Shown here: piece after piece, positions 3,187 to 59,574 of the stretch
Numbering within the stretch: position 1 is the stretch's first letter
Layout: every line of letters begins with the position of its first letter
Virus record (IMG/VR): IMGVR_UViG_3300023199_000204
Span: 252,474 to 316,473 of that record
Direction: 5' to 3' (one strand)
DNA: 64,000 nucleotides
Position numbers and translations under genes: made by a program
Notes under the pieces: model-generated
Databases searched by the model: none
What the model was told of the DNA's origin: nothing
The model's input: only the letters and a program-made list of their open reading frames with translations

Positions 3187-3286
3187 GGAGCAGTAAAAGA
3201 GTTAGTAGAACAGCTCGGAACGAGAAACGAAAGCTCAGCCTTCTTAGGAAGTGTGGAAAATGTAGGTTCGAGTCCTACCTGCTCCG
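3187..3286 (+). ncRNA. Non-canonical tRNA-like RNA (100 nt)
   Basis: Perfect GGAGCAG/CTGCTCC acceptor and GTAGG-TTCGAGT-CCTAC T arm; no canonical anticodon arm. Confidence 0.65.
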
Positions 3287-3779
3287 CAAAGGACAAGGGA
3301 ATCATAGAGGAGGCTTCTATGAAACATTTAAATCAAGAAAAAATGAAAGTTGTTAGTTTAGAAACTAATGGTAAGAACAAAGAAGTTATTTCTAAAGAGC
3401 GAGACTTTGGTGCCCGAATAGGGGCTATTATATCTTATGTAGATTGGAAACCTATATCAAAATTAGTCAATAGAATGTTAGGAAAAATAAATGGCATTAC
3501 AAAATCCAAGTCATAAATTATACGAAGAAATGTATAATAAAAAAGAGCATATAAAAAACTATGCTAAGTCAATATCAAGATATTTTGGATTAGGATTTTC
3601 TTTATATGGCATATTAGATAATCCTAATAGACTTGTATATGATTTAGATTTACATTTAACGGCTTTAAGTGAAGAAAAAGTTCTATTCATAGTAGATTTA
3701 ATATCTGAAAAATTAGGAGATTTTCTAGCCTCCCCAGACAAAGAGGCAGAAAAGAAATAAAAAAGAGAAATATAAAAGT

Positions 3780-9027: not shown

Positions 9028-9513
9028 GGAGATTATATGGAAAAAGTAGAACTAGACCTACCAAAGCTGGTTGAAGCTGATGATTATCACGAATTTAAAT
9101 GGCTAGAAAAACATCTTCAAAAGTTAAATAAAGAATTATATGTTGAAGAATTGACTCCATATTATGAAACAATAGACTATATAGCTATCATCTATTATAA
9201 AAACAAAGATGCTAAATATCATCAGTTAAAAGCAAGTGTTGAAATGGAAGTTAATAGTGGATAAATTTATTTTAAAAAATTTGAAAGAAATTAAAAGATC
9301 TTTAATAAAGGACCAAGAATTTACTATAAAAGTATCCGAAGAAGCAATTCACCTAATAGATGAAATTTTAAAAAATAAGGCATTGTTCAAAAGACAAACA
9401 AGAAAATTGCTAAATAGACTTGAAAAATTAGATAATTGTGTAGATATTGGAGAAATGATATATTATCAAGATTATAGTTAAAAATCTATCAATTAAATTA
9501 TATTAGGATTACT

Positions 9514-9609
9514 ATGATTGTTTTTAATCTAAACCTATCAAATTTAGAACACGCCCATAGCGAAGAGCACGGACTCTCTTCAGCGGCAGGGAGAGGTGTA
9601 ACTATTTAA
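9514..9609 (+). CDS. Putative attenuator leader peptide 1 (MIVFNLNLSNLEHAHSEEHGLSSAAGRGVTI)
   Basis: AGGA RBS, 31-codon ORF not in the ORF track, directly upstream of antiterminator/terminator. Confidence 0.7.
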   Translation: MIVFNLNLSNLEHAHSEEHGLSSAAGRGVTI

Positions 9610-9611
9610 TA

Positions 9612-9667
9612 GGTCTGGGATTATAATATTTTACGAAGCCTGGGCCATTTGGTCTGGGCTTTTTTTA
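9612..9667 (+). promoter_or_regulatory. Attenuator 1: antiterminator GGTCTGGG (9612-9619) and intrinsic terminator (9636-9667)
   Basis: AAGCCTGGGCC-ATTT-GGTCTGGGCTT plus T run; GGTCTGGG is duplicated just after the leader stop and can pair with the 5' arm. Confidence 0.75.
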
Positions 9668-10154
9668 TTATGAGAAAGAGGCTAAATGAATAAATTAAGT
9701 ACCGCTACCAAAATGGATGAAGTTATGATAAAACTCCTTGACGGCATAACTTTTGAAGGAACAGATATAACGAACGATCAATATAAAAATTTACTCAAAT
9801 ACTATGAATATGATTTAGATCATTCAGATACTATGTCTAAACTGTCTGCTAAATTGACAGATGAAAAATATGAAAAAGAATGTAGCGAATGGGAAGAAGA
9901 AGAAGCAAGTAATAATATATATTATAATGTTCCTAAACAAAAAAAACCTGATATAGAGAATATTTTAAAAGAAACAAAAAGGTTTTATGAGGCAGGAAAT
10001 ATAAAAAATATAATGAGAGAGGCGAGTCACGACGGACGTAGAATTATGGCTTTCATATCAAAGTTTCTTGAAAAAGGAGAAGACCCTGTTAAATTAATAG
10101 CAGAGTGTATGAGTCAAGTGGGATTTGATGTTCAGTTAGAAGAGTAAATTAAAA

Positions 10155-10229
10155 GCTCCTGAGAGCCATTAGGAAGGCTATCAGATTTCCAATCTGACTA
10201 TCGTGCGGGTTCGAATCCCGTCAGGAGCT
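10155..10229 (+). tRNA. tRNA-Gly(TCC)
   Basis: GCTCCTG/CAGGAGC, TCAGA-TTTCCAA-TCTGA, U73. Confidence 0.88.
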
Positions 10230-10233
10230 TTAT

Positions 10234-10305
10234 GGTGGATATGGTGTAATGGTAGCACAAAACACTGTGAATGTTTAGGAGAGGGTTCGTATCCCTCTAT
10301 CCACC
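10234..10305 (+). tRNA. tRNA-His(GTG)
   Basis: G-1:C73, GTGGATA/TATCCAC, CTGTGAA loop. Confidence 0.92.
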
Positions 10306-10356
10306 CTCGTTGAAGTCCCTTTGACTATAAACGTAAGGAGTGACGACCTTACATTT

Positions 10357-10430
10357 GCGACTGTAGCTCAATTTGGTAGAGCACTACATTGCCAATGTAG
10401 AGGTTGTGGGTTCAAGTCCCATCAGTTGCT
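10357..10430 (+). tRNA. tRNA-Gly(GCC)
   Basis: GCGACTG/CAGTTGC, CTACA-TTGCCAA-TGTAG. Confidence 0.92.
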
Positions 10431-10494
10431 TAAAGTTGTGAGTTTGAACACAGGCTCTTTACCCTTAAAATCCTAAGGGGCTCATAACTTTTTT

Positions 10495-10584
10495 GGGAGA
10501 GTGGCAGAGTCTGGCTTATTGCGTTGGTTTTGAAAATCAAAGAGTACTGAAAGGTCTCCGGGGGTTCAGATCCCTCCTCTTCCG
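10495..10584 (+). tRNA. tRNA-Ser(TGA)
   Basis: TTTGAAA loop, long variable arm, G73. Confidence 0.9.
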
Positions 10585-10589
10585 TTTAT

Positions 10590-10663
10590 GCGGGTGTAAC
10601 TTAATTTGGTAGAGTGTGAGATTTCCAATCTTAAGATTGCGAGTTCGAGTCTCGTCTCCCGCT
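10590..10663 (+). tRNA. tRNA-Gly(TCC), second copy
   Basis: GCGGGTG/CTCCCGC, TGAGA-TTTCCAA-TCTTA. Confidence 0.88.
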
Positions 10664-12576
10664 TTTAATAAGGAGGAAGCTAATGGCAGATATAGAGTGT
10701 TCAAAATGGTCTGGTTTTTATAATGTTCCCGAAGGAAGGTGGGATACTAATCATCCTAAATGGGAAAAATATTATGGTGGTAAATCAACGAATGTTAATT
10801 CTCCAGATTATGATCCAAAGTATTCTGACGAAACAGGAGCTTCTTGGTTGAGACGTTTTAAACAGAGGATAAAATGAATCGAAAAGGACATAAAAGGTTA
10901 GATGTTAAAGTAAGAACTGGTGGTAATGGACTATGGTCAAGGGTAGCAAAAGAAGTAATTATTACTAAAATAGAATGGGAAATGTCTGACATTTTAGATG
11001 AAACTTATGTGAAACTATATCTTGATCCCGAAACTTGGAATCAAAAAGAAGATGGTTTAATTTATACAGATGATACTTTTGAAGCAAATATGCGAAATAT
11101 ATTATGTAATATGAAATGTGAAAGAAAACTTATTGATTTGCCTTGGGAGAAACTTTCATATACTGAACAAGGAATGCAGGGAGGACATAAATTTTGTTGT
11201 CCAGATGACTGTAATTCTTGTCCCATATATGTAAGTATGATATTAGGATCTTGGTAGGAGAGCAAATGAAGCTTAAAGAAAGGCCACAAGAGCCGACAGA
11301 AAAAATAGTATATGAAAAACTTAAGAAGAATATATATTCATACTACGAATATGTTAAAAAAAGAAGACCTTGAAGATGATGAAGAATTTGCCATAGAAGA
11401 TTGGAATGATGACGATGACCGCCTAATTGGCGGATGGGTCACAAGAAATGTTAGTGTATCTTTACAAGATATTGTTGATTTCTTTATAGAAAGAAACATA
11501 GATCTCAATGAAGTTTATCCATATTATGAAGAAGAAGTTAGAGTAGATGATGCTTTTATGCTAGGATATGCTGAGCCATTTTTTCATTATACGAAAGAAG
11601 AAGCTGATGAAGATTTTGAAAAAAGAGTTAAGCAATATAAGAAAGATTTAAAAAACTATAAGAAATGGTATAATGAAAATAAAGAAGAAATAAAAGCAGA
11701 AAAGGCAAGGATAAGAGAGGAAAAGAAAAGATTAAAAGAAGAAGAAAAGCAGAATAAAAAATTAGAAAAGTTAAAGAAAAAAAAAATAAATTATAAAAGA
11801 GCTTATGGAGTTAGAAAAATAGTATGTCAAATCACTGGGATCCTTTAAAGGATATTACAATCTTTGCGTTTGAATTATCTCAAAATTCACAAGTAATGAA
11901 TTTGCTAACTGATAAAGGAATTATTAAAATTCACGCTGACGGGGACTGATGTGCTTTTGCGTGGATAGAAGAATTCTCCACACCAGCACTGGGGTTCCCA
12001 GCCAAAATAATTGAAATGAAAGAGGGAACTTATTTTGCTGGAATTAATGAAGATTATGAAGTAACTGATGTTTGTTTTTATAACTTGGAAACTGACAGAG
12101 GAACTTTCGCGATGGAATTGAGAGTATCTCATAACGGTTATTATGGAGGCTCCCTATGTATATTAGAGGCTCCAAAAGATAATGGTTATAAAGATCTTAC
12201 AGAAGAAGACAAAGTATTAATTGATGGTATGTGGTCAAAGCAAATATCTGATGAAGAATTTAATGATTTGTTGAAAAGAACAGATTGGAAAATAAAGGAT
12301 AAAGAAAGTGAAAATAACGGAAGATGAAGCTTGGGGAAATTTTAGAAGGTAAAGATTTAATAGTAAAACAATATGAGTATGTGAGAAGATAGAGTGTTTT
12401 ATTTTCAATAGTTTTTAAAAGAGATGATAAGTTTTATAGTTTTGCTTGGGATCAGTCAGCAATTAAATATCAAGATGGACAGGAGCAATTACATATTGAT
12501 CATGAAGGAATGATAGGTTGTAGAGAAGTGGAACCATATGAAAAAACTATGTATAGAGTTAAAAAATGAATTAAAC

Positions 12577-12650
12577 GGTCCCATAGTCTAATGGTTTATG
12601 ATTTCGCTCTTTCAAAGCGAAGGTGTTGGGTTCAATTCCCACTGGGATCA
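12577..12650 (+). tRNA. tRNA-Glu(TTC)
   Basis: GGTCCCA/TGGGATC, TCGCT-CTTTCAA-AGCGA. Confidence 0.9.
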
Positions 12651-12830
12651 AAGGAAAATATTAAAGTTAAAGAAAAAAAAGAAGCAATAAAATTAAGAAA
12701 AAAAAAGGAAAATCCGTTAATTATATATCTAAAAAATTAAAAGTAGGAAAAGGAAGCGTATCTACTTGGTGTAGAGATATTATTTTAACTGAAGAACAAA
12801 AAAGAAATCTATTAAAAAATAGTAATAAAT
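12651..12830 (+). pseudogene. Remnant of an HTH-containing (homing-endonuclease-like) gene between the two Glu tRNAs
   Basis: Fragments read KEAIKLRK..GKSVNYISKKLKVGKGSVSTWCRDIILTEEQ; no start codon, frameshifted. Confidence 0.45.
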
Positions 12831-12836
12831 AAAAAA

Positions 12837-12910
12837 GGCCCTATCGTCTAATTGGTTTAGGATACGGCGTTCTCAATGCTGAGATCGGAGTTCAAATCTC
12901 CGTAGGGTTA
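12837..12910 (+). tRNA. tRNA-Glu(CTC)
   Basis: GGCCCTA/TAGGGTT, CGGCG-TTCTCAA-TGCTG. Confidence 0.9.
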
Positions 12911-13888
12911 ATAAGGAAATACAATGTTTTTTAATTTCTTGAATAAATTGTTTAGAAAGACTAGTCCCAATGTTAAAAAGTGTGGTATTTATTTATGTGA
13001 TTATGAAATACCAAATACTTTTAATAGAAATTACTGTGATTTTCATAGGGAAAATGGATTTAATGGGGAGCCACTAGTATGTTCAGTATGTAATAAATGT
13101 GCGAGGATTAATTCAAATGGAACCAATTATTGCGATCTCTGCTATTCATTAAAGAATAAAGAGGAAATAGTTAAAACAATTGTTAAATTATGGAATCAAA
13201 ACATTAAAAACATATCATCTTGGGAAGATATGGCGAGGATGGCAGTAGAAGAGTTTAGTTGAAAGGATTTAAATTAAATGTACAGAACTAATGCTTTTAA
13301 AAATGATGACAAGTCTATTGAGGATTTTATTAGGAGGGCCCTAAGGACAAATTTTAATCGCTGGGAAAGAATAGATATTCAACCAATTGGCTCATTCTTT
13401 CATCATAAAGTTTTTACACTATCTAAAACAGAAGAGGATTCAAAAGTAAATATTTTAAGTTTTGTGTTTAGAAAATATTATACAAGACCTGGATATAAAA
13501 TAATAATGTTATTGGGGGAAAGAAAGAACCTTACTATATTTATAGAGATAAGAGAAGTAAAAATAGATTTGAAATTCCAAAGAAATTACATAAACAGATA
13601 ATATCTTTTTATAATGATTTTATTAATTGGGCTGATGAACAAAAAGAAATGAAAAGATTAAAAGAATTTGAAAAGCTATATGAGAAAATATAAGGAAATA
13701 ATGAAAATTAAAGATGAATTTGATTTAGCTAGAGTTATTCATGATATTTTGATGGAAGATTATATTATTTGGAACACGTTTAATTTGGTGAGTAGCAAAG
13801 GTAAAGAAATATATTTAGATAAAGATGATGTAGAGTATGTAATTACGATAAATAAAAATGTTGTTTCAAAAGTATAATGTGGAGTTAA

Positions 13889-14641
13889 ATGTCTAAAAAG
13901 AGAGAAGATATAGATAAAAAGAAAGATATAATAATTTCTATGCTTAAATCAGGAATTTCTAAGGCAGAAGTCTGTAGATATCTTAAGTGTAAATATATAA
14001 CTCTAAAATCTAGATTGGATAAATGGGGATGTAACATAAAAAATACGCATAGAAAAAGTTTCCCGAGACTCAATAATAGAAAACACGTATCTGAATATTT
14101 ACATCACGACAGTAATATTAATTCTTTTAAGCTCAAAAAAAAATTATGGCAGGATGGTTATAAAGCAAAATTTTGTGAAGAGTGTGGAATATATAAATGG
14201 CGTGGAAAACCAGCACCTTTAGAGTTAGATCATACTGATGGTTACAAATTTAATAATTGTATAGAAAATTTAAAGATTCTGTGTGCAAACTGTCACGCTA
14301 AAAAATCAACTAATGGTGGGAAAAATAAAGGTACTTATAAAATTAGCTCCGTCTCTCAATTGGCAGAAGAAACGCGCTTAGACCGCGTACGGTGTGAGTT
14401 CGAATATCACCGGAGCTATAATAAAAAATCTAAAAATAAATGTATTGATTGTAAAAAAGAAATAAAAAAAACTAGTAAAAGGTGTAAGAAATGCTTTTCT
14501 CTCAGTTCAAGAAAAATAGAATGGCCTCCTGTAGAAAAAATACTAGAAATACTAAAAGAGGAAAATTATACAAAGCTTGCTAAAAGATTAGGAGTGACTG
14601 ATAACGCAATTAGAAACTATTTAAAAAGAAACAATAAATAG
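13889..14641 (+). CDS. HNH endonuclease with N- and C-terminal HTH-like regions; contains an embedded tRNA
   Basis: CEECG..LELDHTDG..NN..NLKILCANCH; C-terminal CxxC pairs and LAKRLGVTDNAIR. Confidence 0.85.
   Translation: MSKKREDIDKKKDIIISMLKSGISKAEVCRYLKCKYITLKSRLDKWGCNIKNTHRKSFPRLNNRKHVSEYLHHDSNINSFKLKKKLWQDGYKAKFCEECGIYKWRGKPAPLELDHTDGYKFNNCIENLKILCANCHAKKSTNGGKNKGTYKISSVSQLAEETRLDRVRCEFEYHRSYNKKSKNKCIDCKKEIKKTSKRCKKCFSLSSRKIEWPPVEKILEILKEENYTKLAKRLGVTDNAIRNYLKRNNK
14345..14418 (+). tRNA. tRNA with Leu(TAG) anticodon and short variable loop, inside the HNH ORF
   Basis: AGCTCCG/CGGAGCT, ACGCG-CTTAGAC-CGCGT, GTGAG-TTCGAAT-ATCAC. Confidence 0.8.
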
Positions 14642-15407
14642 ATGGAACCAACTATAAAAAGTGGAACAGAGCTAAAAGAACAAGTTTAAAATGCTAGTAT
14701 TATGATTACATAACATATTTTAAGGAAAAAAAATGAAAGTTTATGTTTTAAAATGGGAAGATAATAGAAATAATAATTGGAATAAATTTAACTTATTTGA
14801 AACAAGAAAGTCAGCCAATGAAAAGGTTAGGGAATATCTTACAAATATTTATATAGAAGAGGAAATGGAAGGCTTTGACACAAATAGTCCAACGGAAGAG
14901 AAATTAAGAAAGAAGGCATCAAAAATATCCTTAAAAGAATTAAGTAAGAAAGTTGGATGTTTATGTTATTATGAAATCATTAGAACAGAAGTCGAAAAAT
15001 AGGAGAGAAATGGGAACTAGATCGATTACCATTGTTAAAGAAAAAGAACTTAAAAGTAAGAATAATTATTTAGTAATGTATAGACAAATGGATGGTCATC
15101 CTGAAACTCACGGCTACGAGCTTGCCAGCTTTTTAAATGGAATGAAGATAGTAAATGGAATTCCATATGGAGAGGACACTTCTCAAATCGCCAATGGAAT
15201 GGATTGTTTGGCAGCTCAGATAGTTGCTTATTTTAAAGACGGTCCTGGTAGTATATATTTATGTCCCTCAAATGAGTTACAACACGAGTGTTTTGATTAT
15301 TATGTTTATTTAAACAAGGGCAACAAAATAATGATTAAGTGTATGAGTGGAGACGAAACATTGTTTAAAGGCACGCCAAAACAATATTTAAAATGGGTAA
15401 ATAAATA

Positions 15408-15617
15408 ATGATAGAAGCTCTTTTTGTCGTAGAAGGTTCGCAGGCTTATAATGCTGGTGTTAGGAAAGGTGATAAAATACTTGCCTTTAATGATGTTGTT
15501 GTTAAGTCTTTAATAGATTATATAAGAGCGAAGAGAAATTCAGGCGAATATGAAACCATTCTCGTTAGTAGGTATGGAGAACAAAAGTATTTTAGATGGA
15601 AAAAGAATAGAGGGTAG
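15408..15617 (+). CDS. Small PDZ-domain protein
   Basis: VVEGSQAYNAGVRKGDKILAFND. Confidence 0.7.
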   Translation: MIEALFVVEGSQAYNAGVRKGDKILAFNDVVVKSLIDYIRAKRNSGEYETILVSRYGEQKYFRWKKNRG

Positions 15618-15698
15618 GCATATGTTGGTTTGATGCGACCGCCTGCTAAGCGGTTGGCTCCGTGATGGAGTCCGCGAGTTCGATTCTCGTGCCCTCTG
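15609..15698 (+). tRNA. tRNA-Ser(GCT)
   Basis: ACCGC-CTGCTAA-GCGGT, long variable arm. Confidence 0.9.
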
Positions 15699-15733
15699 CT
15701 TAAAGGAGAAAGAATGAGATTTTGAATATCTTG

Positions 15734-15823
15734 GGAAGATAGGTAGATATGGTTTGCTACGTCAGTTTGGAAAACTGATCTGTCTTGTAAAAGACAGTGC
15801 GGGTTCGAATCCCGTGTCTTCCG
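15734..15823 (+). tRNA. tRNA-Ser(GGA)
   Basis: TCAGT-TTGGAAA-ACTGA, long variable arm. Confidence 0.9.
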
Positions 15824-16491
15824 TTGTTTAAAAGGAGAGACTTATGTTTAGAAAGTTTAGAAGCATAGTTTTGATATTTTTTATTCCATTCGTTCTGATT
15901 TTTGAAGGATTACGAAAAGTTTTAAAACATTTGAGAAGATTTCTTTCTTTACTTGGACACGAAAGAATAATTAGTCATTATAAAAGAAGCAAGTTTAATC
16001 CATATGAAGAAGCCAATAAGATGGGATATTATATATGCTTAGATCCTTATGAAGCAGAAAAATATATAACAATTCCATTACCAAATCCTAGTAGTATTAA
16101 TGATGTTAAATCATATTGGGCTAAAAGTTTTATAGATTATCCAAAAGAAAGAGCACCTAAGGGCAAACAATGGAAACTTTTTACTGGAAAAAATGAAGGT
16201 GTTAATTTTGCTGATGGAATGCCAGAATGGAGATTAGTTGATGAAAGTAATTAATTCAGGATATTTAAAATATATTCAAAACTTTTATAATTATTTGTCT
16301 AAAATAAGGGCAAAAAGTGTAGATGTTAGTGGATCAGTTTATAAAGAAATTCGAAATCATTTAGTTGATGTTTTTAATCCCTGTTCTTCATTATCGATAA
16401 TCAGAAAACATTCGGACCCTACACGCATTTTTGTTGGTCATTTAATTTTAGAAAATAATGAGGCCGCGGAGTTTTATGTTAAAAGGAAAAA

Positions 16492-17658
16492 ATGAAATAT
16501 ATAATATTAAGTGATCTTCATTTAGGGCACAAAGGGATCCAGAATAATGGATTTGTATCTTTACTTTCTAATATTCCAGAGGGTGCGGATGGATATGGCA
16601 AGAGTAAGTTAGACAGTTTTTCTACAGCCATAAAAGATTTTTGTGGAGAAGATAAAGCAGTTTTGATTTTAAATGGTGATTTATTAGAGCTTTCATTAGC
16701 GACAATGAGAGATGCTCTTGACAGCTTTTTAGATGTGATTGCTACAATAAAAGACAATGTAAGTAAAATAATATTAATTGTTGGAAATCACGATCATCAT
16801 ATTTGGTCTTTACATTCAGAGTATAGCAGGTCATTAAATCATTTACTTTCTGGAGATTTGCCAGCAGTGGGGACGGCTTATAGGACAACGATATTTGCTG
16901 AGAAAGCACATCTTTTAGATCCGCTTATTAAAAAACAAATTGACGAAAACATTGACTTTAAAGTATCATATCCTTCTTTACGGCTCCATTTAAATAATGG
17001 AGATGAACCAGTTTATTGTTATATTACACACGGTCATTTATTGAGTGGATTATATAATTTAACTTCAAGAATACTAAAACCTTTTGCTATTGGTAGAGAA
17101 ACAGAATATACAATTGCCGAAGTTAATTCTGCCTTAATTGAGTTTATGTATTGGTCAGCAGGAGAAATGGGCGATGGGATGGGAGTTGATGGGATCCTTG
17201 AGGCAATGTACACGGACTTAGAAAAGGGAAAGAGTTCTAAAATGAAGGAACTTCTTGTTAATTTATCTAATACATTGTTTCCAGATGGAGTTTTATCGTT
17301 TGTCCCAGATGTTTTGGAAAGAAAAATATTTAGTTGGCTAGCAGAAAAGATGTCCAAGAAACTATCAAAGGATAGAGATAAGCCCATATCCTCAGTTGAT
17401 AGATACGCTTCTTTGGAAGATACTAGAAATTACGTTAATGATTGGACTAACAATGTTGTTGATTTATCACCTCCATATAAAAGAATGATTTTTGTTTCTG
17501 GTCATACGCATCGTGCTGACGAGTTTAATATTAATGAAACTGTTAAATATTATAACACTGGATCGTGGTTATTAGAGCCAGCCCATCCTGAACCAGAGTC
17601 AAGACTCCTTTTTATAGAGGACGGAGAAGAACTGAAAATTGAGTTTAAGGTAATATAA
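16492..17658 (+). CDS. Calcineurin-like metallophosphoesterase
   Basis: SDLHLG, NGD, GNHD, THGH, GHTH and NTGSW motifs. Confidence 0.88.
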   Translation: MKYIILSDLHLGHKGIQNNGFVSLLSNIPEGADGYGKSKLDSFSTAIKDFCGEDKAVLILNGDLLELSLATMRDALDSFLDVIATIKDNVSKIILIVGNHDHHIWSLHSEYSRSLNHLLSGDLPAVGTAYRTTIFAEKAHLLDPLIKKQIDENIDFKVSYPSLRLHLNNGDEPVYCYITHGHLLSGLYNLTSRILKPFAIGRETEYTIAEVNSALIEFMYWSAGEMGDGMGVDGILEAMYTDLEKGKSSKMKELLVNLSNTLFPDGVLSFVPDVLERKIFSWLAEKMSKKLSKDRDKPISSVDRYASLEDTRNYVNDWTNNVVDLSPPYKRMIFVSGHTHRADEFNINETVKYYNTGSWLLEPAHPEPESRLLFIEDGEELKIEFKVI

Positions 17659-18431
17659 AATGAACAACTTTGATTATAAAAAAGCGTTTGAGTGGATATT
17701 AAAGCACGGAGCATATATTAAACTTCCCTATAAAGAAGAACTTGATGACTGGTATAGAGAGATTGGATGTCCAACTTTAGGAATAATAAATGGAAAATAT
17801 ACTGTTAGATCTATTAGAAATATGTATGGAAAGAATTTTGATTCATTGAAAGAGGCATTAGAAGAGTTTATTCCTAATTGTGATAATATAGGTGCTATAC
17901 AATGCTATACTGAAAATGAGTTAGGGATTAACTCTGAAGAAAATTGGGATGAAATGGTAGAGGCAATTAAAAAAGAAAAAGAAAAAAGAGATGCTAACAA
18001 AAGCAGAAATGATGATTGTTAGGAAATATAATATTGGAGTAATATGGGACACTGGTGCTACGAAATAGTAGATAATTATAATGCTTTAATAGCAAGGTGC
18101 GAAGATATATTTTGGTTTTGGTTGAGCAAAAAAATGTATCTTGATATAGATGAAAAAGATTATTATTGTGCTCATATAAATATTTCTTTTGATAAAAATA
18201 ATGATTTAATCAAATGTGAGTATAAAGGAAAAAGATGGGAGTTCCCATCATCTTATATAGATAATGATAAATGGATGACTGAATTAGAATTTCAAATAAA
18301 AGAAGAAAATATTGAAGAACAAATTGTAAATATTAAAAATCGCTTTGCTAATGAAAATGAAGAAAAGAAACTTTATTTAAAATTAAAAGAGAAATATGAA
18401 TGATAGATATAAGAAAGTAAATAACAAAATA

Positions 18432-18504
18432 GGGGATGTAGTTTAGTTGGGAAAACCTCTGATTTGCGATCAGAAGAGCGTCGGTTCGAGTCCGACCATC
18501 TCCA
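18432..18504 (+). tRNA. tRNA-Ala(TGC)
   Basis: GGGGATG/CATCTCC with G3:U70, TTTGCGA loop. Confidence 0.92.
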
Positions 18505-18535
18505 ATAATTTCAAATTTATTAGGAGGATAGGAAT

Positions 18536-18850
18536 ATGCGAAAAGCAAAAAGAAAAGTTTTTTAAAAATATCTGGAAAGACGACAGACGGAAAGTTAGTA
18601 TATAGTGGTCTTTATGAACTTAGGAATACTTACGGAATTCCATTAGATATAAGTATTCCATTTATTCACGATAATGATGGAATTCCAGACTGGTTTAATA
18701 TATATGAAGAGGCTTTAAAATATAACCTTCCATATGATAGATTAAGAAATAATTTAAGTGTTATAATAGTTGATCTATATAGTGAAGACATATGTAATTC
18801 AATATTATTTAAACTTGATAAAGTTAATGAAATTGGATTAGTTAAAATAA
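18536..18850 (+). pseudogene. Frameshifted ORF resembling a fragment of alanyl-tRNA synthetase
   Basis: Frame starting 18559 reads SGLYELRNTYGIPLDI, like the AlaRS motif GxxxFxLYDTYGFPxD; the ATG at 18536 is out of frame at A/T runs. Confidence 0.5.
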
Positions 18851-18852
18851 AA

Positions 18853-18926
18853 GGGGCTGTAGCTCAATTGGGAGATCAACTCTCTGGCAGAGAGAAGGTT
18901 TGTGAGTTCGAGTCTCATCAGCTCCA
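18853..18926 (+). tRNA. tRNA-Ala(GGC)
   Basis: GGGGCTG/CAGCTCC with G3:U70, CTGGCAG loop. Confidence 0.85.
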
Positions 18927-22469: not shown

Positions 22470-24371
22470 GAGAAGCTGTGTCGCGAATATTAATGATTTT
22501 AGGAATTATTACGCTAGCTACAGCGTGTGGGTTTTTTGGTCAGATTGAAAAAGTAAGTATTAAAAATAAGGTAGGAGTGGAATTTAGAAATGTTTCTACT
22601 ACTGATAGTAATGAAAGATATAGTTTAGGAACAGGAATCGATATAAAATCAACAACTGGATACGGAGCAAACATCTTTTATAGATTTAGAGACACAAATT
22701 GGAGTGTTTTTGAACAAGAGCACGGGGTGTTTTTTGGATTTAATGTTCCTTTGTATAAGAAAAAGTAGGTAATTAAATGAAGAAAGCTTCAGGATTATAT
22801 GATGTTAATACAATTATTAATATATCATCAGAAAATTTAATGAATGACGGATTTGAAGAGTGGGTGCCCTCTCGCCCAATTGGAACATTTGGTTTCTTGT
22901 CGAGATGTAAAAAAGCTTGGATGGTTTTTACAGGGAAGGCAGATGCTCTTATATGGCCTAAAGGACAGTGATGAGAAAGATTAATAAAGTTTGCGGTAGC
23001 ATTTTAAAACAGTTAGAAATACCAGATAATCTTGAATATTGTTGTGAATTTATAGAGCAACAACTTAATTATGATTGTAAGCAGCACGGTTCGGGATGTC
23101 CAGATATAGGAATTAGATTAACAAAGAATATTGAATTAATGCTTATAGCACCAAATGCTGAGTATATATGTAATTATTGTCCAAGTTGTGGAAAAAAATG
23201 GTCTAAGGAGAGATAATGTTTTATGATTTTAGGCAGAATAATTCTGGAGGTTCTTTTAAAGTAACTGATAGTGTTGGACATTATGTAATAATAGAAGCTG
23301 ATAATGCTCAAGAAGCTAACGAAAAAGCAGAGCAAGTGGGCATATATTTTGATGGTTGTTCAACTGGAAAAGATTGTAATTGTTGTGGAGACAGATGGTA
23401 TCCACAATGGGATTCCGATGGTAGTGAAGAACCATCCATTTATGGAGAAAATATAGAAGAATATAAGAATTCAATAAGATATTCTGTTTCAGATGAAGAA
23501 GTAATTTTTGTTTACTATAAAGGCGGACACTCTAAAAAAATAGTCATTGATGTTAAATCAGAAAAATAAAAGACCGAAAAGGCTTTAAGAGATGAGGCAG
23601 ATAAAACTTGGGCAGCTTTTGCTGGGATAAGCTATTGTTATAAAAATCCTGAAAGAATGTATCAAGCTGATTTTTACGATAAATATTATGATGAGTCAGG
23701 CAATAGAAGTATTGAGAAAAAAGGACTTGTAGTTAATAATGATTATAATTATCTCACATTTTCTTCTGATAATAAAGAAGAAGTGGAAGATTTTATAAAA
23801 GGGTATAGAACATATGCTGAGGCAGTTAGAGAGGCTATAATTAATTTATCAGATTTGAACAGAGATGAGTTCAGTAGCAAGGGAGAGAAAGCTTTAAAGG
23901 ATATGCTTTTGAATGCACTGAAAAATGTAATGTCGACATATTCATAATATAAAAACTAAGAGCTGGTATGAAAAGATACAATATAAAAAAACAATTAGCT
24001 TACTATGAAATTTCATTTTTAAACAACAAGAATCTTAATGATTTGATAAATGAATTCAATTCATTAAAAAAGAAGTTCGGAAGAAAATGGAATCTTTCAA
24101 TCAAGTTGGAAGACTCTTATGATAGTTATGAGTCCGAGCCTTCATATAATAGCTTTTGCGTTTATGGTGAAAGATTAGAAACTATAAAAGAAGCAAAGAA
24201 GAGAATTAAAGAGGAAGAGGAATATAAAGCTTTAAGAAAAGAGCAAGCAAGGGCTCGGGCAAAGGAAAGAATAAAGGCTGAAAAGGAAACTTATTTAAGA
24301 CTTAGGAAAAAATTTGAAAAAAAAAATCTTAATTTATATTAATAATAATATATTAGGACAGGAATATAATT

Positions 24372-24491
24372 ATGTCTATATTTAATTTACGCTTGAAATT
24401 AAAATCTATCCAAATTACTGATCAAGTTGATCAGAAGGATAGATGTGTGCGCCAATATAATACCACAAATATTGGAGGCTCAAGCGTATAA
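24372..24491 (+). CDS. Putative attenuator leader peptide 2 (MSIFNLRLKLKSIQITDQVDQKDRCVRQYNTTNIGGSSV)
   Basis: AGGA RBS, 39 codons, N-terminus similar to leader 1 (MxxFNLxL), last codons overlap the antiterminator. Confidence 0.72.
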   Translation: MSIFNLRLKLKSIQITDQVDQKDRCVRQYNTTNIGGSSV

Positions 24492-24553
24492 GACATTAAT
24501 ATTATTAGATGTTTTATCAAGCCGCTTGGGTCAAAAGCCCTGGCGGCTTTTTT
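24477..24553 (+). promoter_or_regulatory. Attenuator 2: antiterminator GGCTCAAGCG (24477-24486) and intrinsic terminator (24519-24553)
   Basis: AAGCCGC..GCGGCTT stem plus T run 3 nt before tRNA-Cys; GGCTCAAGCG pairs over 10 bp with CGCTTGGGTC in the terminator 5' arm. Confidence 0.78.
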
Positions 24554-24556
24554 ATT

Positions 24557-24642: not shown

Positions 24643-24775
24643 GGATGCGTTGAGCAGTGCGGTGAGCTTGGCGGGCTGTGGGGATTGATTAAATGGTAAT
24701 TTTAATGAGTTCGATTCTCACATTCCCAAAACCCCGTGGTCTTCGGGCTTGTAGGTTCGATTCCTACCGCATCCA
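24643..24775 (+). tRNA. tRNA-Tyr(GTA) interrupted in the anticodon by a ~50-nt nested mini-tRNA (24680-24729)
   Basis: GGATGCG/CGCATCC-A73, GCGGG/CCCGT stem, Tyr-type long variable arm; removing the insert gives loop CTGT+AAC. Confidence 0.8.
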
Positions 24776-25879: not shown

Positions 25880-26575
25880 ATAAGGAGAAAGGAATGTCTA
25901 ATAAATAAAAAAGAAGTTCTAGAGGTGTTAGAAAGGTATGAAGAGATTAAAAGTGAAATTAAAGGAACATTCTTAATTTATGCTAAATATTGTGGTATTT
26001 AAGTTTCAGAAATAGTTCATATTGAGGTAAACGAAAGTGAGGTTGAAGTAGAATACACTGAGCCAGGCGGATGTAGCTGTTGCTATACTAGTAGATACTC
26101 TACTTTTCCTATTAGTTATTTATGGGAAGAGAATTGGATTGAAAAGCTAAAAGCTAAGCATCAAGTGGAATTAGCCGAAAAAATTAAAAAGAAAGAAGAG
26201 GAAAAAGAAAGAAGAGAAAGAGAGCAACTAGAGCTGGATAAAAAGCTTTATAAAAGATTAAAAGAAAAATTCGGCTAAAATAATCTTAGAGGCAGATTCC
26301 ACTGGGTGAGTTAATAAGGAAAGTAAAATAATGAATTTCGCAAAATGGTTTAGAGAACAGCAAAAAGACGCTAAGGCTGTAATTAATTTAACAAAACTTG
26401 ATGTCAGAGATGAGCCTTGTCTTACCCTAAAGGGCAATAATAAATATAAAGTTTTGATAACACAAAATACATTTATTTCGAATGTATGTGGAATTTTCGT
26501 TGAAGATGTAAATTATGTATTAATGGAGGCACAAAATGAAGAAACGAAAACGTAAATAAAAATCAGGCAAACTAT

Positions 26576-26723
26576 GCCTCCGTGGTGTTAATGGCTTAGC
26601 ACACTGGATTTTGCGAAAGACATTTGGTATGTAGATGTTAGAGGCAACTCTTTGGTCTAAGTGAGTTCGATTCTCACCTTTCGCGTAATCCATGAAGTGT
26701 GGGTTCGAATCCTACCGGGGCTA
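26576..26723 (+). tRNA. tRNA-Lys(TTT) interrupted in the anticodon by a 73-nt nested tRNA-like element (26613-26685)
   Basis: Outer D and T arms intact, TGGA/TCCA stem; removing GCGAAAG...CTTTCGCG gives loop TTTT+TAA; outer acceptor is one G short. Confidence 0.75.
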
Positions 26724-27641
26724 TAAAATAGATTAGATAAGAGGATTTAGTTAATATTTATTATTAAAAGGAAAGGAAAAAATGAAAAGTAAAATTTTAT
26801 CAGTTGTATTGTCAGTTTGTTTGTTAATTGGAACGGTATTTGCGACTTCTGCCTGTGGAGACGACTTAGTTGTTAATGGAAAAAACATATAAAACCAAAG
26901 GTATTTTTACTCAAGATGAAAAAGACCCTTGTATTAAATATAGTTTAATTGCTGGAAATGTTGCTTGGGCAATTATATTTTTTGGAACAGCAGTTGCTCC
27001 AGTTTATTTTTTTGGATTTTCTTTATGGGAGCCAGCGAGAGTTAAGTCAGAATGCGAAAAGAAATAAAGTCTCCAAAAATAGGAATGGGAGCAACCATTC
27101 AACTTTGGTCAGATAGAATTGCTGGAACAATCGTGAGAATTACAAAAACTAAAAAGACAATCTTTATTCAAGAAGATGCGGCATCAAGAATTGATAGAAA
27201 CGGAATAAGTGAAAGCCAAAGATATGAATATACTCCAAATTCTAAAGGAAATGTATATCGTGCTTCTTTAAGAAAATATGGAAGGTTTAGAGTATCAAAA
27301 ACCAATGAATTAGTTAGTATTAGAGTAAGACGCAAGTTTTACGATTATTTTTTTTAAGGACATTATGGGAAGATTAAAAGTAGCTAGTTATATTGAAGAG
27401 TGGTTGAAATTAGAATGCCCACACTGTGAAGAGTCAAATTGGCTTCAATCATCATTTGGAGACATATTAGACCCTGATGTTGATGCGATTAGATGCCTAT
27501 CCTGTAAAGAGTTGTTTCTTGTTTGTGAAAGAGAGGAATGGGAGAGTGAAGATAATTTATACATAGAAGATGGAGTGACTGATCCGTCTGAAATAAAAGA
27601 GTTAGATTTTTATAATGAAGAGATTTGGAATGATTAAATAA

Positions 27642-28386: not shown

Positions 28387-28460
28387 TCAGCTGTCTTCTA
28401 ACTGGATAAGATCCCTGGCTTTGAACTAGGGCAATGTGGGTTCGAATCCCATTATTCCCG
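28387..28460 (+). pseudogene. Chimeric tRNA: Gln(TTG) body with a non-matching 3' acceptor strand
   Basis: D, anticodon (CCTGG-CTTTGAA-CTAGG) and T arms intact, but TCAGCTG cannot pair with TATTCCC-G. Confidence 0.7.
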
Positions 28461-30010: not shown

Positions 30011-30441
30011 TAGGAGAGTATATGGTTTTAAGAAAATATGTTGTAGTAAGTGAAATGCTTACAAGAACGGAATGGGTAGAGTATCCCGTAGCGGGCTATG
30101 AAGAATGTTATCATATCTATAATGTTGTTGAGGCAGAAAGTCACGCAAAAGCAAAATGGAAAGTTTGGAAAAACTCTGATGATTATAAAAAATATGGTGG
30201 ATATGATATAAGAGATATGCCGAAATTTTCTATAAAATTATATAAAGAAGAGTTTAATGATTAAATAATCAAGAAATGGTTCTGATTTGAAAGTTGAACT
30301 GAAGGCTGATTGAAAGGATTAAATAACATCGCATTGGGCTGACCAAAAAACGCAGCTGGGTTAAAGCTCCCGGCAGGTTTAATCTAAGTAGATGTTAGTA
30401 TGAAAGATTAGTAGATGTTCCGAGTATTGATTATTAAAGAC

Positions 30442-30518
30442 ATTCCGATAGTTTAATGGCAAAAACGCCCGCACCCAGCACAATGCGATTTGAAGCGGGA
30501 GATGTTGGTTCGAGTCCG
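30442..30518 (+). ncRNA. tRNA-like RNA with 22-nt expanded anticodon loop and unpaired acceptor
   Basis: GTTT/AAAC D stem, CCCGC/GCGGG stem, GTTGG-TTCGAGT-CCGAC T arm. Confidence 0.6.
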
Positions 30519-30532
30519 ACAGAGTTTGTTGA

Positions 30533-35303: not shown

Positions 35304-36161
35304 TTTTAAAAGGAGAAAGATATGAAAAAGTATATTCTTGGAGAAATGTGGCTTGATGAAAATCTTGGTATAAGATATATTTAGGAACCGTTTAACTCTA
35401 CTTATCTAGAAGTTATTACAATAAGTAAAAAAGGAAAAGCCAAGGTTAGAAAGATAGTTCCTGATATGGCTTTAATATTACAAAATTTTGTTTCTCAAGC
35501 GAATGAGTTATTAAGAAAACATCAACTTTTTGAAAAGTCTTGTGAAGCTTTAGATGAAATAAAAGGTTTAAGACACCCTAAAAATGAAGAAGAAATAACT
35601 GAAGAACAACTGAAGTTTATAAAGTTAATGACTGGTTCAGAGCTACCAGAGGCTGATTTATAATGCCAACTAAAGGAATGTATCAGGTGTGGTGGTGTGG
35701 CAGAGGGGAAGAATATTTTGATAGAGAGTTCAATAATTTTGAATCTGCCATACAATACATAAGATCAGAATGGGGCTATGGGGCTATCCACAGAAACTAA
35801 TTCTGCCAGATGGGACTAATTATTCTTTTGACGAACCAGAATTTAATAATTATGTCGTTTTAAGTCTCTTTTCTTTAAAAGATGAAATATTAATTAATCC
35901 CAATACTAGGCAAGTTTATGTAATTAATATAATTAATAAAGATAAAAGAGTATGGAAATATTTAAGAAACGCTAATAGAATTACTAATATTAGAGAGCGT
36001 ATGGATGACTATATGAAAAATGTTAATGCTAATGAAATTGTTGATCTTCTTTTAGATTATGATATGTTAGAACCAATTAGTTGTGGAATATCTTCTGGCG
36101 TAGAGGATATGAGGTTTACCCAAAGTGGAAGAAGAAAGAGAGGAGATTAAAAATAAATAAC

Positions 36162-36244
36162 GCATCCCGTTCCAGACGCCTGTCTTCTAAATAGGTTCCT
36201 TAATAGTTTGGGGGAGGTAAGAGGTTCGAGTCCTCCGGGGTGTT
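36162..36244 (+). tRNA. D-armless 8/4-type tRNA-like RNA with TCT (Arg) anticodon
   Basis: 8-bp GCATCCCG/CGGGGTGT acceptor, 4-bp T stem, CCTGT-CTTCTAA-ATAGG, long variable hairpin. Confidence 0.72.
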
Positions 36245-37768
36245 TAAAAAAGAGAAAGATATGTCAATGAGAATTAAGCAACATAAGTTATTCATAGAGA
36301 CTAAAAAAAAGAATTGAGGCTGGCTACGATCTTCAAACAGAGGCAATGGTTTTGTCGGATAGGCTTATGGATATTGGAGATCCAGACAGAAGGGGAGAGT
36401 TTATAAAACACTCCATAATTATAGAAACCTCTAATTCAAAACCTAGATTAAGAAAGTTAAAAAGAAAGGGAGAACAAATTTGGAAAACAAATGCTAAAAA
36501 GTGGTTTAATCTTCCTTTGAAAATAGATTCTAATAAAGTAAAAGCACAAGGAAAGGTTTATACTAGTATAGATTGTCTTTTAATGTATGAATATGAAGTT
36601 GGAAAATCTGGAGTTCCGTTTTACCCAAATAAAGGCGATCCAGATAAACATTTAATGTTTATTGCTAATCAGAGATCTAATTGGAGAGCTTTAACTAATA
36701 CTAGTAATTACTATACCTCCTTTCACGAAGAGTATATTTATATATTTATGAAAAGTGGTTTGGTAAATAAAATAATCTATACTCCTAAATTAAAAAAAAC
36801 GGTAAATAAAATTCTAATAAAAGAGCCACTATATACAGAAGAAAGGAAAATTTACATTAAAGATAATGGGCATTAATTATGTCACCAAATCCAGAAGTAT
36901 ATAAAAAATTTGAAGTTTTAAGGCATTACGAAGACTTTATCGTTTCCCTCTTATATATTAAGAGGGATATTAGGAATGGGTTTAATTTAGGTAGAAAGAA
37001 AGAAGTAAAAAAAAGAAATAATTGTTTTAAATAAAAAGGATTTTTTTATATAAAAAGAAAATGTTCTGGAAGGAATTATTTTCAAAAATTGATAGTTATA
37101 ATATTCCTTATAAAGACAGAAAAGAGATTATAAAAAGAATAAGACAAGAAAGGTATTATCTTAAACTACCCCGTCCTGAAAATTGGGAACAGAGATATGG
37201 AAAAATAATAAGTTGGTGGGCAAAATGGGTAATAAGAAAAAAAATATAGATGATCCTTGTGTAAGCAACTACCGACTTGCGAGAGTTAATGATAAACACT
37301 GGGTTAAAAGATATTATTTACAACAGGATAGGAGCTGTTGTGGAGTCTTTGATGTTAGGAAAATAGGACCAGATTTGCGTGTATATCTTATTGGATGTAA
37401 TTATGGGCACTAATGGAGTAGGTAATGAATATAGAAGATTTAATAAAATTAATTGGGAAAGCATATGATTCATATTTTAACTTAGTTGTTAATTAATCTC
37501 AAGATAAATATTTGGCAAAAAGTTATTGTGAATGTTTCATTCTGCAAAATATAGATTAAAAATATATTTTGCCAAAAAAAGTATTCTTTGTTTTATAAAG
37601 AAGCGAGAAGAGGAGAGAAAATAAAATGTTTATCAGAGTTGGATTCTTGCTTATATTCAGTTTTAAAATGCTTTAGAAAGTCAAGTGAAGAGGCATTTAA
37701 AATTATAAAATTGATTAAGAAATATTATGAAAAGTTATATAAACATAAATTAAATTATAAAGGAGAGA

Positions 37769-38766
37769 ATGTTAGTGTCTAAAATATTACTAAAGTTTAT
37801 AGATCTATTTTGTGGAATCGGAGCATTTCATCAAGCAATTATTAATCTCAAGAATAAATCTATAATTAAAGATTATAAATGCATTCTATCTTGTGATATA
37901 GATAAAGATGCAAAGGAAACTTATCAAAAAAACTTTGATACAGATTTATTTATAAATGATGTTAAAGATGTATCAGACATTAATAATACTTATAGCTTAT
38001 TATGTGCAGGATTTCCTTGTCAACCGTTTAGTATTTCAGGAAATAAACGGGGTTTTAATGATGAGAGAGCAGGTCTATTTTTTAAAGTTGTTGATATTGT
38101 AAAAAAAACTAATCCTAATTTTATAATAATAGAAAACTCGCCTCGTTTAATTAGGAATAGTAGTTATTTCTCAGTCATACAAAATGAATTAGATAATGCT
38201 GGATATAATGTTAATGCTGAGATTATTAATTCTAATAAATTCGCAACTCCTAAAAAAAAGAATCAAAGGTTATATAGTTGCTATCAATAAAAATATTAAT
38301 ATTAATTATATATTTTCCTAAAGGGGAGGAACATAATTTATCAGTCCATGATATATTAGATTCTTCAGTTCAGAAACACTTAATCGAAAAAAGATATGAA
38401 ATAATATGGAATAAAACTGTTAATGAAAACAAAAAATACGGACCTATTAGAATAGGATATGTTTTAAAGAGAAGACAAGGAGAACGCATTTATAGTGTTG
38501 ACGGGCATTCAATAACCTTAACTGCTTCGGGAGGAGGCCCTGGTAGAAGTACTGGATTATATTGTGTAGATAAAAGTAAAAACATTATTAGAAGATTATC
38601 AGTTAATGAATGTAGGAAATTATCAGGCTTTAATAATGATTTTATTGTTAATAAAAATAAAAGAGTTGCTTATAAACAATTTGGAAATACTATTGTAGTT
38701 CCTGTAGTAGAAGCTATTATAAAAAATTTAGTTTTACAGACAAAAGAAGAGAATTGGAGTGACTAG
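37769..38766 (+). CDS. C5 DNA cytosine methyltransferase (M.HhaI-like), split by a frameshift at an A run near 38255
   Basis: FCGIG, GFPCQPFS, EN motifs; target-recognition region QGERIYS..ITL.ASGGG; QFGN motif X. Confidence 0.88.
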
Positions 38767-40027: not shown

Positions 40028-40471
40028 ATGAACCCACAAGCTATTAGATTATATCACGTTGGCTACCATAACAAACCAGGACAGATATACAGGTTTTATA
40101 CTATAAGGCTAAAATGGGATGATGGTGGGAGAATGGATTTTCCAAGTGAGGAGCACGCAAATGCTTACTTAGAAGGAAGACCAGCAAATTTTGTAAGTAA
40201 TATTAAATTATCATCAAAAGTCCCTGTTAAAAAGGAAGAGGTTATTGCTGAAGCAACAGAATTTAATGTTATGTTAAATTCCTATGGAGTAAATAAAGTT
40301 CCTGTAATCAAGGTTGTGAGAGAAATAACTTCTCTTGGTCTCAGAGATGCGAAGAATCTCGTTGAGTCTGCCCCTGTTGCGATACAGGAGGGTTTAGAGA
40401 AAGAGCAAGCCGAAAAGACAGCAAGGAAGTTAAAAGAGCTTGGAGCGGAAGTGGAAGTGGTTTCAGCTTAA
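40028..40471 (+). CDS. Ribosomal protein L7/L12 C-terminal domain fused to an unrelated N-terminus
   Basis: [46 protein letters not shown]. Confidence 0.88.
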
Positions 40472-43468: not shown

Positions 43469-43946
43469 ATGGATAAAGAACTATTGTTGCTTTTAAATGA
43501 ACACATGATGAAAGAATTTGATGCCTATTTTCAATACTTAGCAACGGCATCCTTTTTTGAAAAGAAAGAGTGGCTTCGCACATTGGGCAAGGGTTCAAGC
43601 TGAAGAAGAAAGGGCTCACGCAATGAAAATATATGAGCATTTAATCGAAAGAGATTTAATACCTAACTTTTCAAATATAACTATTCCTCAGCTTGATTTT
43701 AACGGACCAGAAGATGCGTTTGCCTCGGCTTATAACGATGAAGTAAATCTTACAAGGAACGTTCAAAACTTAGCTGAGATATCTTTATCTTATAAAGATT
43801 ACGCAGCATTTGATTTAATGACTTGGTTCGCCAAAGAGCAAATTGAAGAAGAAGATATGCTAGATAATATAACCACTAGGATTACTATGGCTGGGAATAA
43901 TATATCAGCAATGTTATTCTTGGATCAAGAACTAGGAAAAAGATAA
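43469..43946 (+). CDS. Ferritin (FtnA-like), frameshifted near 43570
   Basis: LLNEHMMKEF..YL upstream in another frame; GFAHW..Q.EEERAHAMK; WF.KEQIEEE; LFLDQELGKR. Confidence 0.85.
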
Positions 43947-47433: not shown

Positions 47434-48741
47434 ATGTCAGTAATAGCAATGGAAGTAATGGAGGCGTTTGATCATCCAAATGCTGATTCATTAAGAGTTT
47501 ATAAATTTATAGCACCAGGGCAAGCATCAAAAGAGCGTCCACTTCAAATAGTTGCGAATCTTGAAAATGTGTATGAGGTTGGCGATGTCGTTGCTGTTGC
47601 GTTGGTTGGAACTGTTTTAAAAGATGAAACCACTATCAAAAAAGTAAATCTTCGTGGAGAGTCTTCATACGGAATGGCTTTGGGAAAAGTCGATGCCAAG
47701 GTCGGCGAAAATCTTTCTGATAAATATGAGGCAGAAGAGATAAAACCTTCAATGGCAGGATTTATTAAATGGCCGAGCATTTCAGGTTTTCATAATATTA
47801 GAAAATCATTAGAGAAAATAAAAGAATATGAGGGAGGTGCTTTTACTTATCCAAAACTTGATTACAAATGTAAAGTGAAATTACACGGAACGAATTCGGG
47901 TGTTCATTTACATTCTGATGGAACATTTGCTGTTCAAAGTCGTTCAAGAATATTAACTCCTGAGCACGATAATTTGGGGTTTTATAGATGGACGCAGGAT
48001 AGGAAAAATCATTTTGAAAAGTGGGCAAAATCTGCCGGTAGAAATTTAACCGTATTCGGAGAATTTTGTGGAGAGGGAATTCAAAAAGGCGTTGCTGTAT
48101 CCAAGATAGAGAGGAAGATATTTGTTGTTTTCGCAGTCCAAGTTGATGAAAATACACTAATAACCGATCCAGAAGAAATCAATGGTTATGTTTTGGAACA
48201 CGAAGATATAAAAGTTTTACCTTGGTATGATGCTAATTTCTTCATTGATTATTCAAATACTGATTTGTTAAGGGCTGTTATTAAGGATATAAATGCTGAG
48301 GTAGATAAAGTAGAAAAAGAAGACCCTTGGGTAAAAGAAGTTTTTGGAGTGAGTGGTATAGGCGAAGGGTTAGTTTTTTATCCTTATAAAGAATATGATA
48401 GGGATAGAATATCTTTATTAATGTTTAAAGCGAAAGGAGAGAAGCATCAGGTTGCTGTTCAAAATAAGCCAGTCCAACTAGATCCAGAAGTATTAAATTC
48501 AATTAATGAGTTCTCTGATAAATTCATTACAGAGGCAAGACTTGAACAAGGAGTTGCTGAAGGTTGTGATGGCAAGTTGGAAATGAAAATGATGGGTAAG
48601 TTTATTAAATGGATTATGTCTGATGTTAATAAAGAATCAAAAGACGAATTGGAAGCTTCGGGACTTAAATGGAAACAAGTAGGAAAAGAAGTTTCAAGTC
48701 GAGCCAGAAATTGGTATAAACAAAAGGTGGAAGAAATATAA
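47434..48741 (+). CDS. Rnl2-family ATP-dependent RNA ligase with N-terminal tRNA-binding OB-fold-like domain
   Basis: Motif I KLHGTN, QSR, FGEFCG, EGLVF, FKAK; N-terminal HPNADSL..IVAN..GDVVAVA..LRGESSYGM as in Trbp111/PheT-type domains. Confidence 0.85.
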   Translation: MSVIAMEVMEAFDHPNADSLRVYKFIAPGQASKERPLQIVANLENVYEVGDVVAVALVGTVLKDETTIKKVNLRGESSYGMALGKVDAKVGENLSDKYEAEEIKPSMAGFIKWPSISGFHNIRKSLEKIKEYEGGAFTYPKLDYKCKVKLHGTNSGVHLHSDGTFAVQSRSRILTPEHDNLGFYRWTQDRKNHFEKWAKSAGRNLTVFGEFCGEGIQKGVAVSKIERKIFVVFAVQVDENTLITDPEEINGYVLEHEDIKVLPWYDANFFIDYSNTDLLRAVIKDINAEVDKVEKEDPWVKEVFGVSGIGEGLVFYPYKEYDRDRISLLMFKAKGEKHQVAVQNKPVQLDPEVLNSINEFSDKFITEARLEQGVAEGCDGKLEMKMMGKFIKWIMSDVNKESKDELEASGLKWKQVGKEVSSRARNWYKQKVEEI

Positions 48742-49446: not shown

Positions 49447-49491
49447 AAGGAGCGAATGGCTTGGATAAAAGCCACGCTCCTTTTGTTTTTT
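49447..49491 (+). terminator. Intrinsic terminator after the last tRNA of the second array
   Basis: AAGGAGCG-AA-TGGCTT/AAGCCA-CGCTCCTT followed by TTGTTTTTT. Confidence 0.75.
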
Positions 49492-49559
49492 ATAACTATC
49501 ATAATTGCTGTCGTTACGGCAATAATAGTTCATATAATTATTAACTGAAAGGAAATAAA

Positions 49560-59220: not shown

Positions 59221-59574
59221 GGGGACGAAATGGATTCGACAGAGGCGACAAAGATAAATAAAGCAAGTAAGGGAATGTCTATTTTCTCTTTGAAAAATAT
59301 AGGCAAAAATAAGTAACGAAAATTACGCACTTGCTGCCTAATTAGGTAGCACATCTGAAGTTTTCTCTCACTCGTGACGGAACTTCAAGATGTCAAATGA
59401 ACGAGGTAATAATTATTCTTTTAGCGATTGGGAATAATTATGAAATTTTAATTGCTTCGTAATTTAGTAGCTTGTTTATGGGCGACTTTATTATTAAATT
59501 AAATCATAAACTAAACTTGTAGATGTCTTTATTATTGAGTTTCTGGACCCGGTTTTCGAAGGCCGGCGTCTCCA
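59221..59574 (+). ncRNA. ssrA: tmRNA
   Basis: GGGGACG-AAATGGATTCGAC 5' end, CGTCTCC-A 3' end with G3:U70, tag frame NENYALAA* at 59315-59341. Confidence 0.93.

Follow-up and report, generated by a model that had tools for sequence, protein, structure and literature searches.

Leader-peptide attenuators of enterobacterial amino-acid operons, among them trpL, hisL, leuL, pheL and the multivalent thrL, ilvL and ivbL, consist of a short translated leader followed by a Rho-independent terminator and a mutually exclusive antiterminator, and the outcome is set by where the ribosome sits on the leader. T-box riboswitches also act through a terminator/antiterminator choice upstream of translation-related genes and report on the tRNA pool, but they do so by binding one uncharged tRNA directly through a specifier codon and the T-box bulge, without translation. 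Separately, the reason why phages carry tRNA genes, and when they use them, has been debated for decades, with codon compensation, replacement of degraded host tRNAs and escape from tRNA-cleaving defences as the current proposals. Recent work treats phage tRNAs as supply or counter-defence (PMC10264068, PMC11464382, PMC11555353). To our knowledge it does not address how phage tRNA genes are regulated, and in the literature we searched we found no report of a leader-peptide gate in front of phage or cellular tRNA genes. Here we describe a candidate for such a gate.

The window analysed is the last 64 kb (64,000 nucleotides) of a 316,473-bp viral contig, IMGVR_UViG_3300023199_000204. It has about 30% G+C, nearly all of its genes are on the + strand, and it carries a long island of tRNA genes mixed with small ORFs as well as a phage-encoded tmRNA downstream of the tRNA units (59221-59575, Rfam 121.6 bits). 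An earlier note, made from the sequence alone, proposed that a short ORF and terminator in front of tRNA-Cys form a codon-sensing attenuator, the second of two, and that the tRNA complement is split into two separately gated units. The sequence features it described for this element are all present. The uORF (24372-24491, + strand) has 39 codons plus TAA and is also called as a gene in public assemblies. It is preceded by a ribosome-binding region (24349-24364) comprising the 10-mer TATATTAGGA with AGGA and a second GGA 8 nt before the start codon. The 10-mer has only two exact copies on the + strand of the window, at 9499 and 24349, each just before one of the two leaders, and both leaders begin with M-x-[IV]-F-N-L-x-L before diverging after the first eight residues. 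As the note had claimed, residues 13-34 of leader 2 are confined to Ile, Gln, Thr, Asp, Val, Lys, Arg, Cys, Tyr and Asn, and the peptide contains no His, Glu or Ala. We take codons 9-34 as the sensor codons, while codons 35-38 form the antiterminator strand.

The uORF is followed by a strong hairpin (24519-24549, -19.6 kcal/mol) with a T-run ending at 24553, and tRNA-Cys starts at 24557; taken as a whole, terminator T2 spans 24519-24556 with its T-run at 24548-24556. Scans of the coding strand found only three clean intrinsic terminators in 64 kb, at 9638-9668, 24521-24556 and 49449-49489, and these bracket the two tRNA blocks exactly. A fourth hairpin, at 1586-1619, lies inside a purA-like gene and was rejected as a terminator, and the 10 kb upstream of the window contain no tRNA and no terminator. 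The third terminator lies about 300 nt after the last tRNA and is the likely end of the second unit. The region 49447-49548 also contains a strong AAGGAG ribosome-binding site within the hairpin and the ATG (49456) of a 30-codon hydrophobic ORF, with the T-run encoding Leu and Phe residues, so this hairpin could hide the ribosome-binding site as well as terminate transcription.

The sister element, attenuator 1 (9499-9668, + strand), comprises the same 10-mer, a uORF of 31 codons (9514-9609), an antiterminator strand that starts 2 nt after the stop codon (9612-9619) and a terminator hairpin (9636-9660) with its T-run. Over 16 kb the only differences between the window and the Logan assembly of the same phage are two single-T indels, at 9628 and 9660, both inside attenuator 1. 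One lengthens the spacer before the terminator and the other shortens the T-run from 7 to 6; they may be homopolymer errors or a regulatory variant. A shorter JGI contig shares both and has one further substitution, at 8423. Other assemblies of the phage are about 100% identical and thus carry no useful variation.

To examine whether the terminator could be placed under ribosome control we compared alternative folds of the leader RNA. The last codons of the uORF (24477-24486) can form 10 base pairs, two of them G-U, with the 5' arm of the terminator (24523-24532), enclosing an A/U-rich spacer hairpin (24488-24517). This duplex scores -15.6 kcal/mol with a shuffle p of 0.007, and it is the minimum-energy fold of the nascent RNA before the 3' arm exists (z -3.0). 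At equilibrium the terminator always wins wherever the ribosome is placed, so the switch must be kinetic, as it is in classical attenuators. We therefore folded the truncated transcript with a ribosome footprint imposed, and found that the antiterminator has a probability of about 0.9-0.97 for stalls at codons 1-32 and about 0 once the ribosome occupies codons 33-40; without a ribosome the probability is 0.88. A ribosome at the last six codons or the stop codon would cover 24477-24486. A further 7-bp hairpin inside the uORF (24452-24475), possibly a pause or spacer hairpin, does not compete with the antiterminator strand. Leader 1 behaves in the same way and has the same geometry, with the antiterminator 5' strand under a ribosome sitting at the stop codon and a stop-to-hairpin gap of 26-27 nt in both leaders, although its antiterminator helix is not significant on its own (shuffle p 0.066; z -0.75).

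The tRNA genes of the first unit, unit A, which starts at 9686 just after terminator T1, lie at 10154-18926 (+ strand) and are Gly x3, His, Ser x3, Glu x2, Leu(TAG) and Ala x2. Of these, tRNA-Leu(TAG) (14344-14419) is overlapped by a 250-aa ORF (13889-14641) with weak HNH and helix-turn-helix matches, so either the ORF is over-extended or the tRNA lies inside a homing-endonuclease-like gene. The second unit, unit B (24557-49143, + strand), runs from tRNA-Cys, which directly abuts T2, to tRNA-Thr(TGT). It contains 14 tRNA genes confirmed by standard tools, 13 by ARAGORN defaults and Lys(CTT) by Rfam, which are Cys, Asn x2, Lys(CTT), Leu(CAA), Ile x2, Thr x2, Arg(ACG), Val x2, Ser(CGA) and CAT. 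Unit B also holds many small ORFs, including an RNA ligase with a tRNA-binding domain (47434-48741), homologues of which are cellular. At 37769-38766, 40028-40471, 43557-43946 and 1363-2358 the window encodes a C5 cytosine methylase split into two overlapping ORFs, a protein with a ribosomal L7/L12 C-terminal domain (in unit B), a ferritin-like protein and an adenylosuccinate-synthetase-like gene.

The tRNA list in the earlier note requires correction. The genes it listed as Tyr (24643-24775) and Gln (26575-26724) appear only when introns are allowed, and ARAGORN then names them His and Ala because the position of the insert is ambiguous. They are interrupted in the anticodon loop by inserts of 50 and 71 nt, one gene being Tyr-like with a long variable arm and the other Gln-like. 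Each insert folds as a 6-bp stem plus a T-arm-like hairpin, sharing the core GAGTTCGATTCTCAC, and so resembles a tRNA acceptor/T-arm minihelix; one possibility is excision by tRNA-processing enzymes followed by sealing by the RNA ligase. Apparent intron-containing tRNAs at the survey loci described below were mostly two neighbouring tRNAs joined by ARAGORN and so do not inform these two genes. The second Lys and second Arg of the note are only degenerate tRNA-like elements. Degenerate or oddly built elements scoring below threshold in Rfam and ARAGORN occur at 28392-28460, 30440-30528, 36160-36245 and 3187-3287, one with a TCT anticodon loop but a reduced D-arm and another with a 13-15-nt insert in the anticodon loop. 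The claim that only Asp lacks a tRNA is also wrong, as the TTT, TTA x2, AAA x2, TCT x2, GGA, GGC, TCA and AGC codons of leader 2 have no confirmed cognate tRNA in unit B either.

To test whether leader codons match the downstream tRNAs we used only ARAGORN and Rfam calls with standard wobble rules. Leader 1 has a readable codon for all 11 tRNA species between the two terminators, while random 30-codon windows from the phage's own genes cover 5.3 +/- 1.6 and none of 50,000 reached 11. Leader 2 covers 11 of 12 confirmed species downstream (P 0.0035), or 14 of 15 with an extended set (P 0.0006), the exception in the confirmed set being Ser(CGA), which has no codon in the leader. Each leader covers the other's set at or below the null expectation. 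When a breakpoint was moved along the 26 ordered tRNA genes, coverage of genes by their own leader peaked uniquely at the real T2 position, with 25 of 26, and a random partition does as well with P 3.6e-4. Pro and Trp are absent from both leaders, and their tRNAs lie upstream of leader 1, outside both units. The match is mostly at the level of amino-acid choice, since synonymous resampling gives only P about 0.06 per leader. About a third of leader 2's codons (Asp x3, Phe, Lys-AAA x2, Leu-TTA x2, Gly x2 and four Ser codons) have no confirmed cognate in unit B, and each codon type occurs only 1-4 times, so that sensitivity to a partial shortage would be low.

It is possible that T2 is an ordinary operon-end terminator with an incidental short ORF, the tRNAs being made by leaky read-through or from an unrecognised promoter. 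The leader follows the preceding ORF by only 29 nt, and no convincing sigma-70-type or Bacteroidota-type promoter was found upstream of either leader. The terminator always forms at equilibrium, which would also fit this reading. However, the set-specific codon match and the unique breakpoint argue against chance, and a strong terminator 3 nt before a co-oriented tRNA gene, with no room for a promoter, needs controlled read-through. We therefore consider this explanation unlikely, an assessment that also draws on the comparative evidence below. A second alternative is that the 39-aa peptide, or the short terminated RNA, has a function of its own, as a micro-protein or as a trans-acting small RNA like rnTrpL, with the terminator simply its 3' end. 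The N-terminal motif shared by the leaders could mean that the peptide itself is functional, and attenuator-derived small RNAs with functions in trans are known (PMC6614838). Against this, the middle of the peptide is not conserved between the two leaders and instead tracks the tRNA sets, and the antiterminator geometry is left unexplained. This is the least likely of the readings considered, although it is also compatible with the attenuator as a second role.

The phage has no close relatives in any collection we could search. Four neighbouring proteins, a tRNA-Cys DNA pattern and a leader pattern found only the same contig or non-syntenic loci in IMG/VR, a metagenome scan returned 80 loci at about 50% identity, none with a tRNA island, and a search of 5.8 billion proteins with the ORF after leader 1 found only itself. 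Megablast against cultured phages gave nothing for the window. We therefore asked whether the layout recurs elsewhere, using a T-arm pattern to retrieve 119 unrelated tRNA-rich IMG/VR loci, 1.1 Mb in all. Of the 20 terminators with a same-strand tRNA within 150 nt downstream, 5 have an upstream complement to their 5' arm at shuffle p <= 0.01, compared with 5 of the 239 other terminators (odds ratio 15.6, P 3e-4). This enrichment argues against an incidental ORF, although 15 of the 20 have no such antiterminator. In the five cases examined in detail the complement ends 5-18 nt before the stop of a 20-36-codon ORF, and the hairpin follows 24-38 nt later. Leaders in other phages share no sequence, only this layout, which weighs against a function of the peptide itself. 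Xanthomonas phage XacN1 and coliphage T5 have no attenuator-like terminator before their tRNAs.

The codon match was also assessed at three of the survey loci, L210, L250 and L246. The 30-codon leader of L210 covers 16 of 18 downstream species (P 2.5e-4), and its one missing amino acid, Thr, has its tRNA upstream of the leader. The 34-codon leader of L250 covers 13 of 13 species (P 0.0017), although a near-consensus sigma-70 promoter (TTGACA, 17 nt, TACAAT; L250:1297-1325) lies between its terminator and the first tRNA, so this array may have basal expression that does not depend on the leader. For both loci, megablast against cultured phages gave only short tRNA matches. The L246 leader covers 4 of 4 species (P 0.015), with a cluster of Arg, Trp, Cys, Pro, Pro and Arg codons before an array of Trp, Pro, Cys and Arg(ACG) tRNAs.

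A search for the L246 terminator/tRNA-Trp junction returned a family of 12 loci with seven distinct leaders, in which sensor codons change with the tRNA array. Three ATA codons occur in exactly the three leaders whose arrays hold an ATA-reading tRNA (TAT or CAT anticodon), CGT occurs only with Arg(ACG), and in one member, L264, GAT sits next to the Trp and Cys codons and the array holds tRNA-Asp. Own-array coverage is 23 of 25 (permutation P 0.018). Where the terminator stem is different (L264) or longer (L256), the 3' end of the leader differs to match. Column-wise covariation could not be used because the alignment put the divergent L264 stem out of register, and per-sequence duplexes gave only modest specificity in cross-pairing energies. 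In the branch comprising L261, L262 and L263 a 1-nt deletion shifts the 3' end of the leader, such that the ORF stops four codons later than in its relatives and a second short ORF keeps the ancestral stop.

Our preferred reading, held with moderate confidence and on computational evidence only, is that positions 24349-24556 form a ribosome-mediated transcription attenuator that gates a block of phage tRNA genes. In the proposed mechanism, if every codon is decoded promptly the ribosome reaches the last codons and the stop while polymerase is making the terminator, covers 24477-24486 and allows the hairpin to form, ending transcription 3 nt before tRNA-Cys. If the ribosome is delayed at an earlier codon, or never loads, 24477-24486 pairs with the terminator's 5' arm and polymerase reads on into the tRNA genes. 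As the leader's codons are mostly those read by the downstream tRNAs, the unit would open when those decoding capacities fall short and close once the phage tRNAs restore them, a demand-driven feedback loop for which the inferred trigger is host tRNA loss late in infection or through tRNA-cleaving defences. The inference of two separately gated units made in the earlier note is supported in silico. The 25-kb unit B also holds dozens of protein genes and may have internal promoters, however, and huge phages may use polymerases that ignore intrinsic terminators.

A translation-linked switch with a different logic is also conceivable, such as a general sensor of ribosome availability or translation shut-off in which codon identity hardly matters, or control through Rho or RNase access rather than the hairpin alternative. 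Any stall at codons 1-32, or no ribosome at all, gives the antiterminator in the fold model, leaders before large arrays use nearly all amino acids (19 distinct residues in both L250 and L210), and codon-level specificity is weak. We nevertheless regard this as improbable, as a general sensor would need neither the split of the tRNA complement between two leaders with complementary codon sets nor the small, matching codon clusters before the small arrays of the L246 family. A broader possibility, which we consider about as likely as not, is that phages with tRNA arrays have repeatedly evolved mini-ORFs that act as sensors of decoding capacity, holding one or a few codons for each tRNA in the array behind them, so that the array is transcribed only when one of those codons cannot be read, either because host tRNAs decay during infection or because an anticodon nuclease defence cleaves them. 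The two circuits of this phage would then let it answer the loss of one subset of tRNAs without expressing the other.

A gate of this kind would show that the phage measures decoding capacity and supplies tRNAs on demand, would give annotators a recognisable motif in front of phage tRNA arrays, and offers a compact, programmable part for sensing particular tRNAs or codons. The cargo is the same as that of the phage tRNA arrays already proposed as supply or counter-defence. In contrast to T-box riboswitches, the sensing element here is an ORF whose translation is inferred; the leader is only about 180 nt long and is coding, and there is no Stem I or T-box sequence and no hit to RF00230 in the window. 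With respect to the enterobacterial leader-peptide attenuators there is no sequence similarity, and no Rfam leader family (His, Leu, Thr, Trp or Phe) matched at the gathering threshold or at E <= 1 across the window, but the element is predicted to work like the trp, his, thr and ilv attenuators. It differs in being phage-encoded, in regulating tRNA genes rather than biosynthetic enzymes, and in having no clear anti-antiterminator (1:2) helix, so that the predicted default without translation is read-through. While the multivalent leaders already sense two or three amino acids at once, the leaders described here sample 10-19 different amino acids once or a few times each rather than using runs of one codon, and would extend leader-peptide attenuation from amino-acid biosynthesis to the tRNA pool itself.
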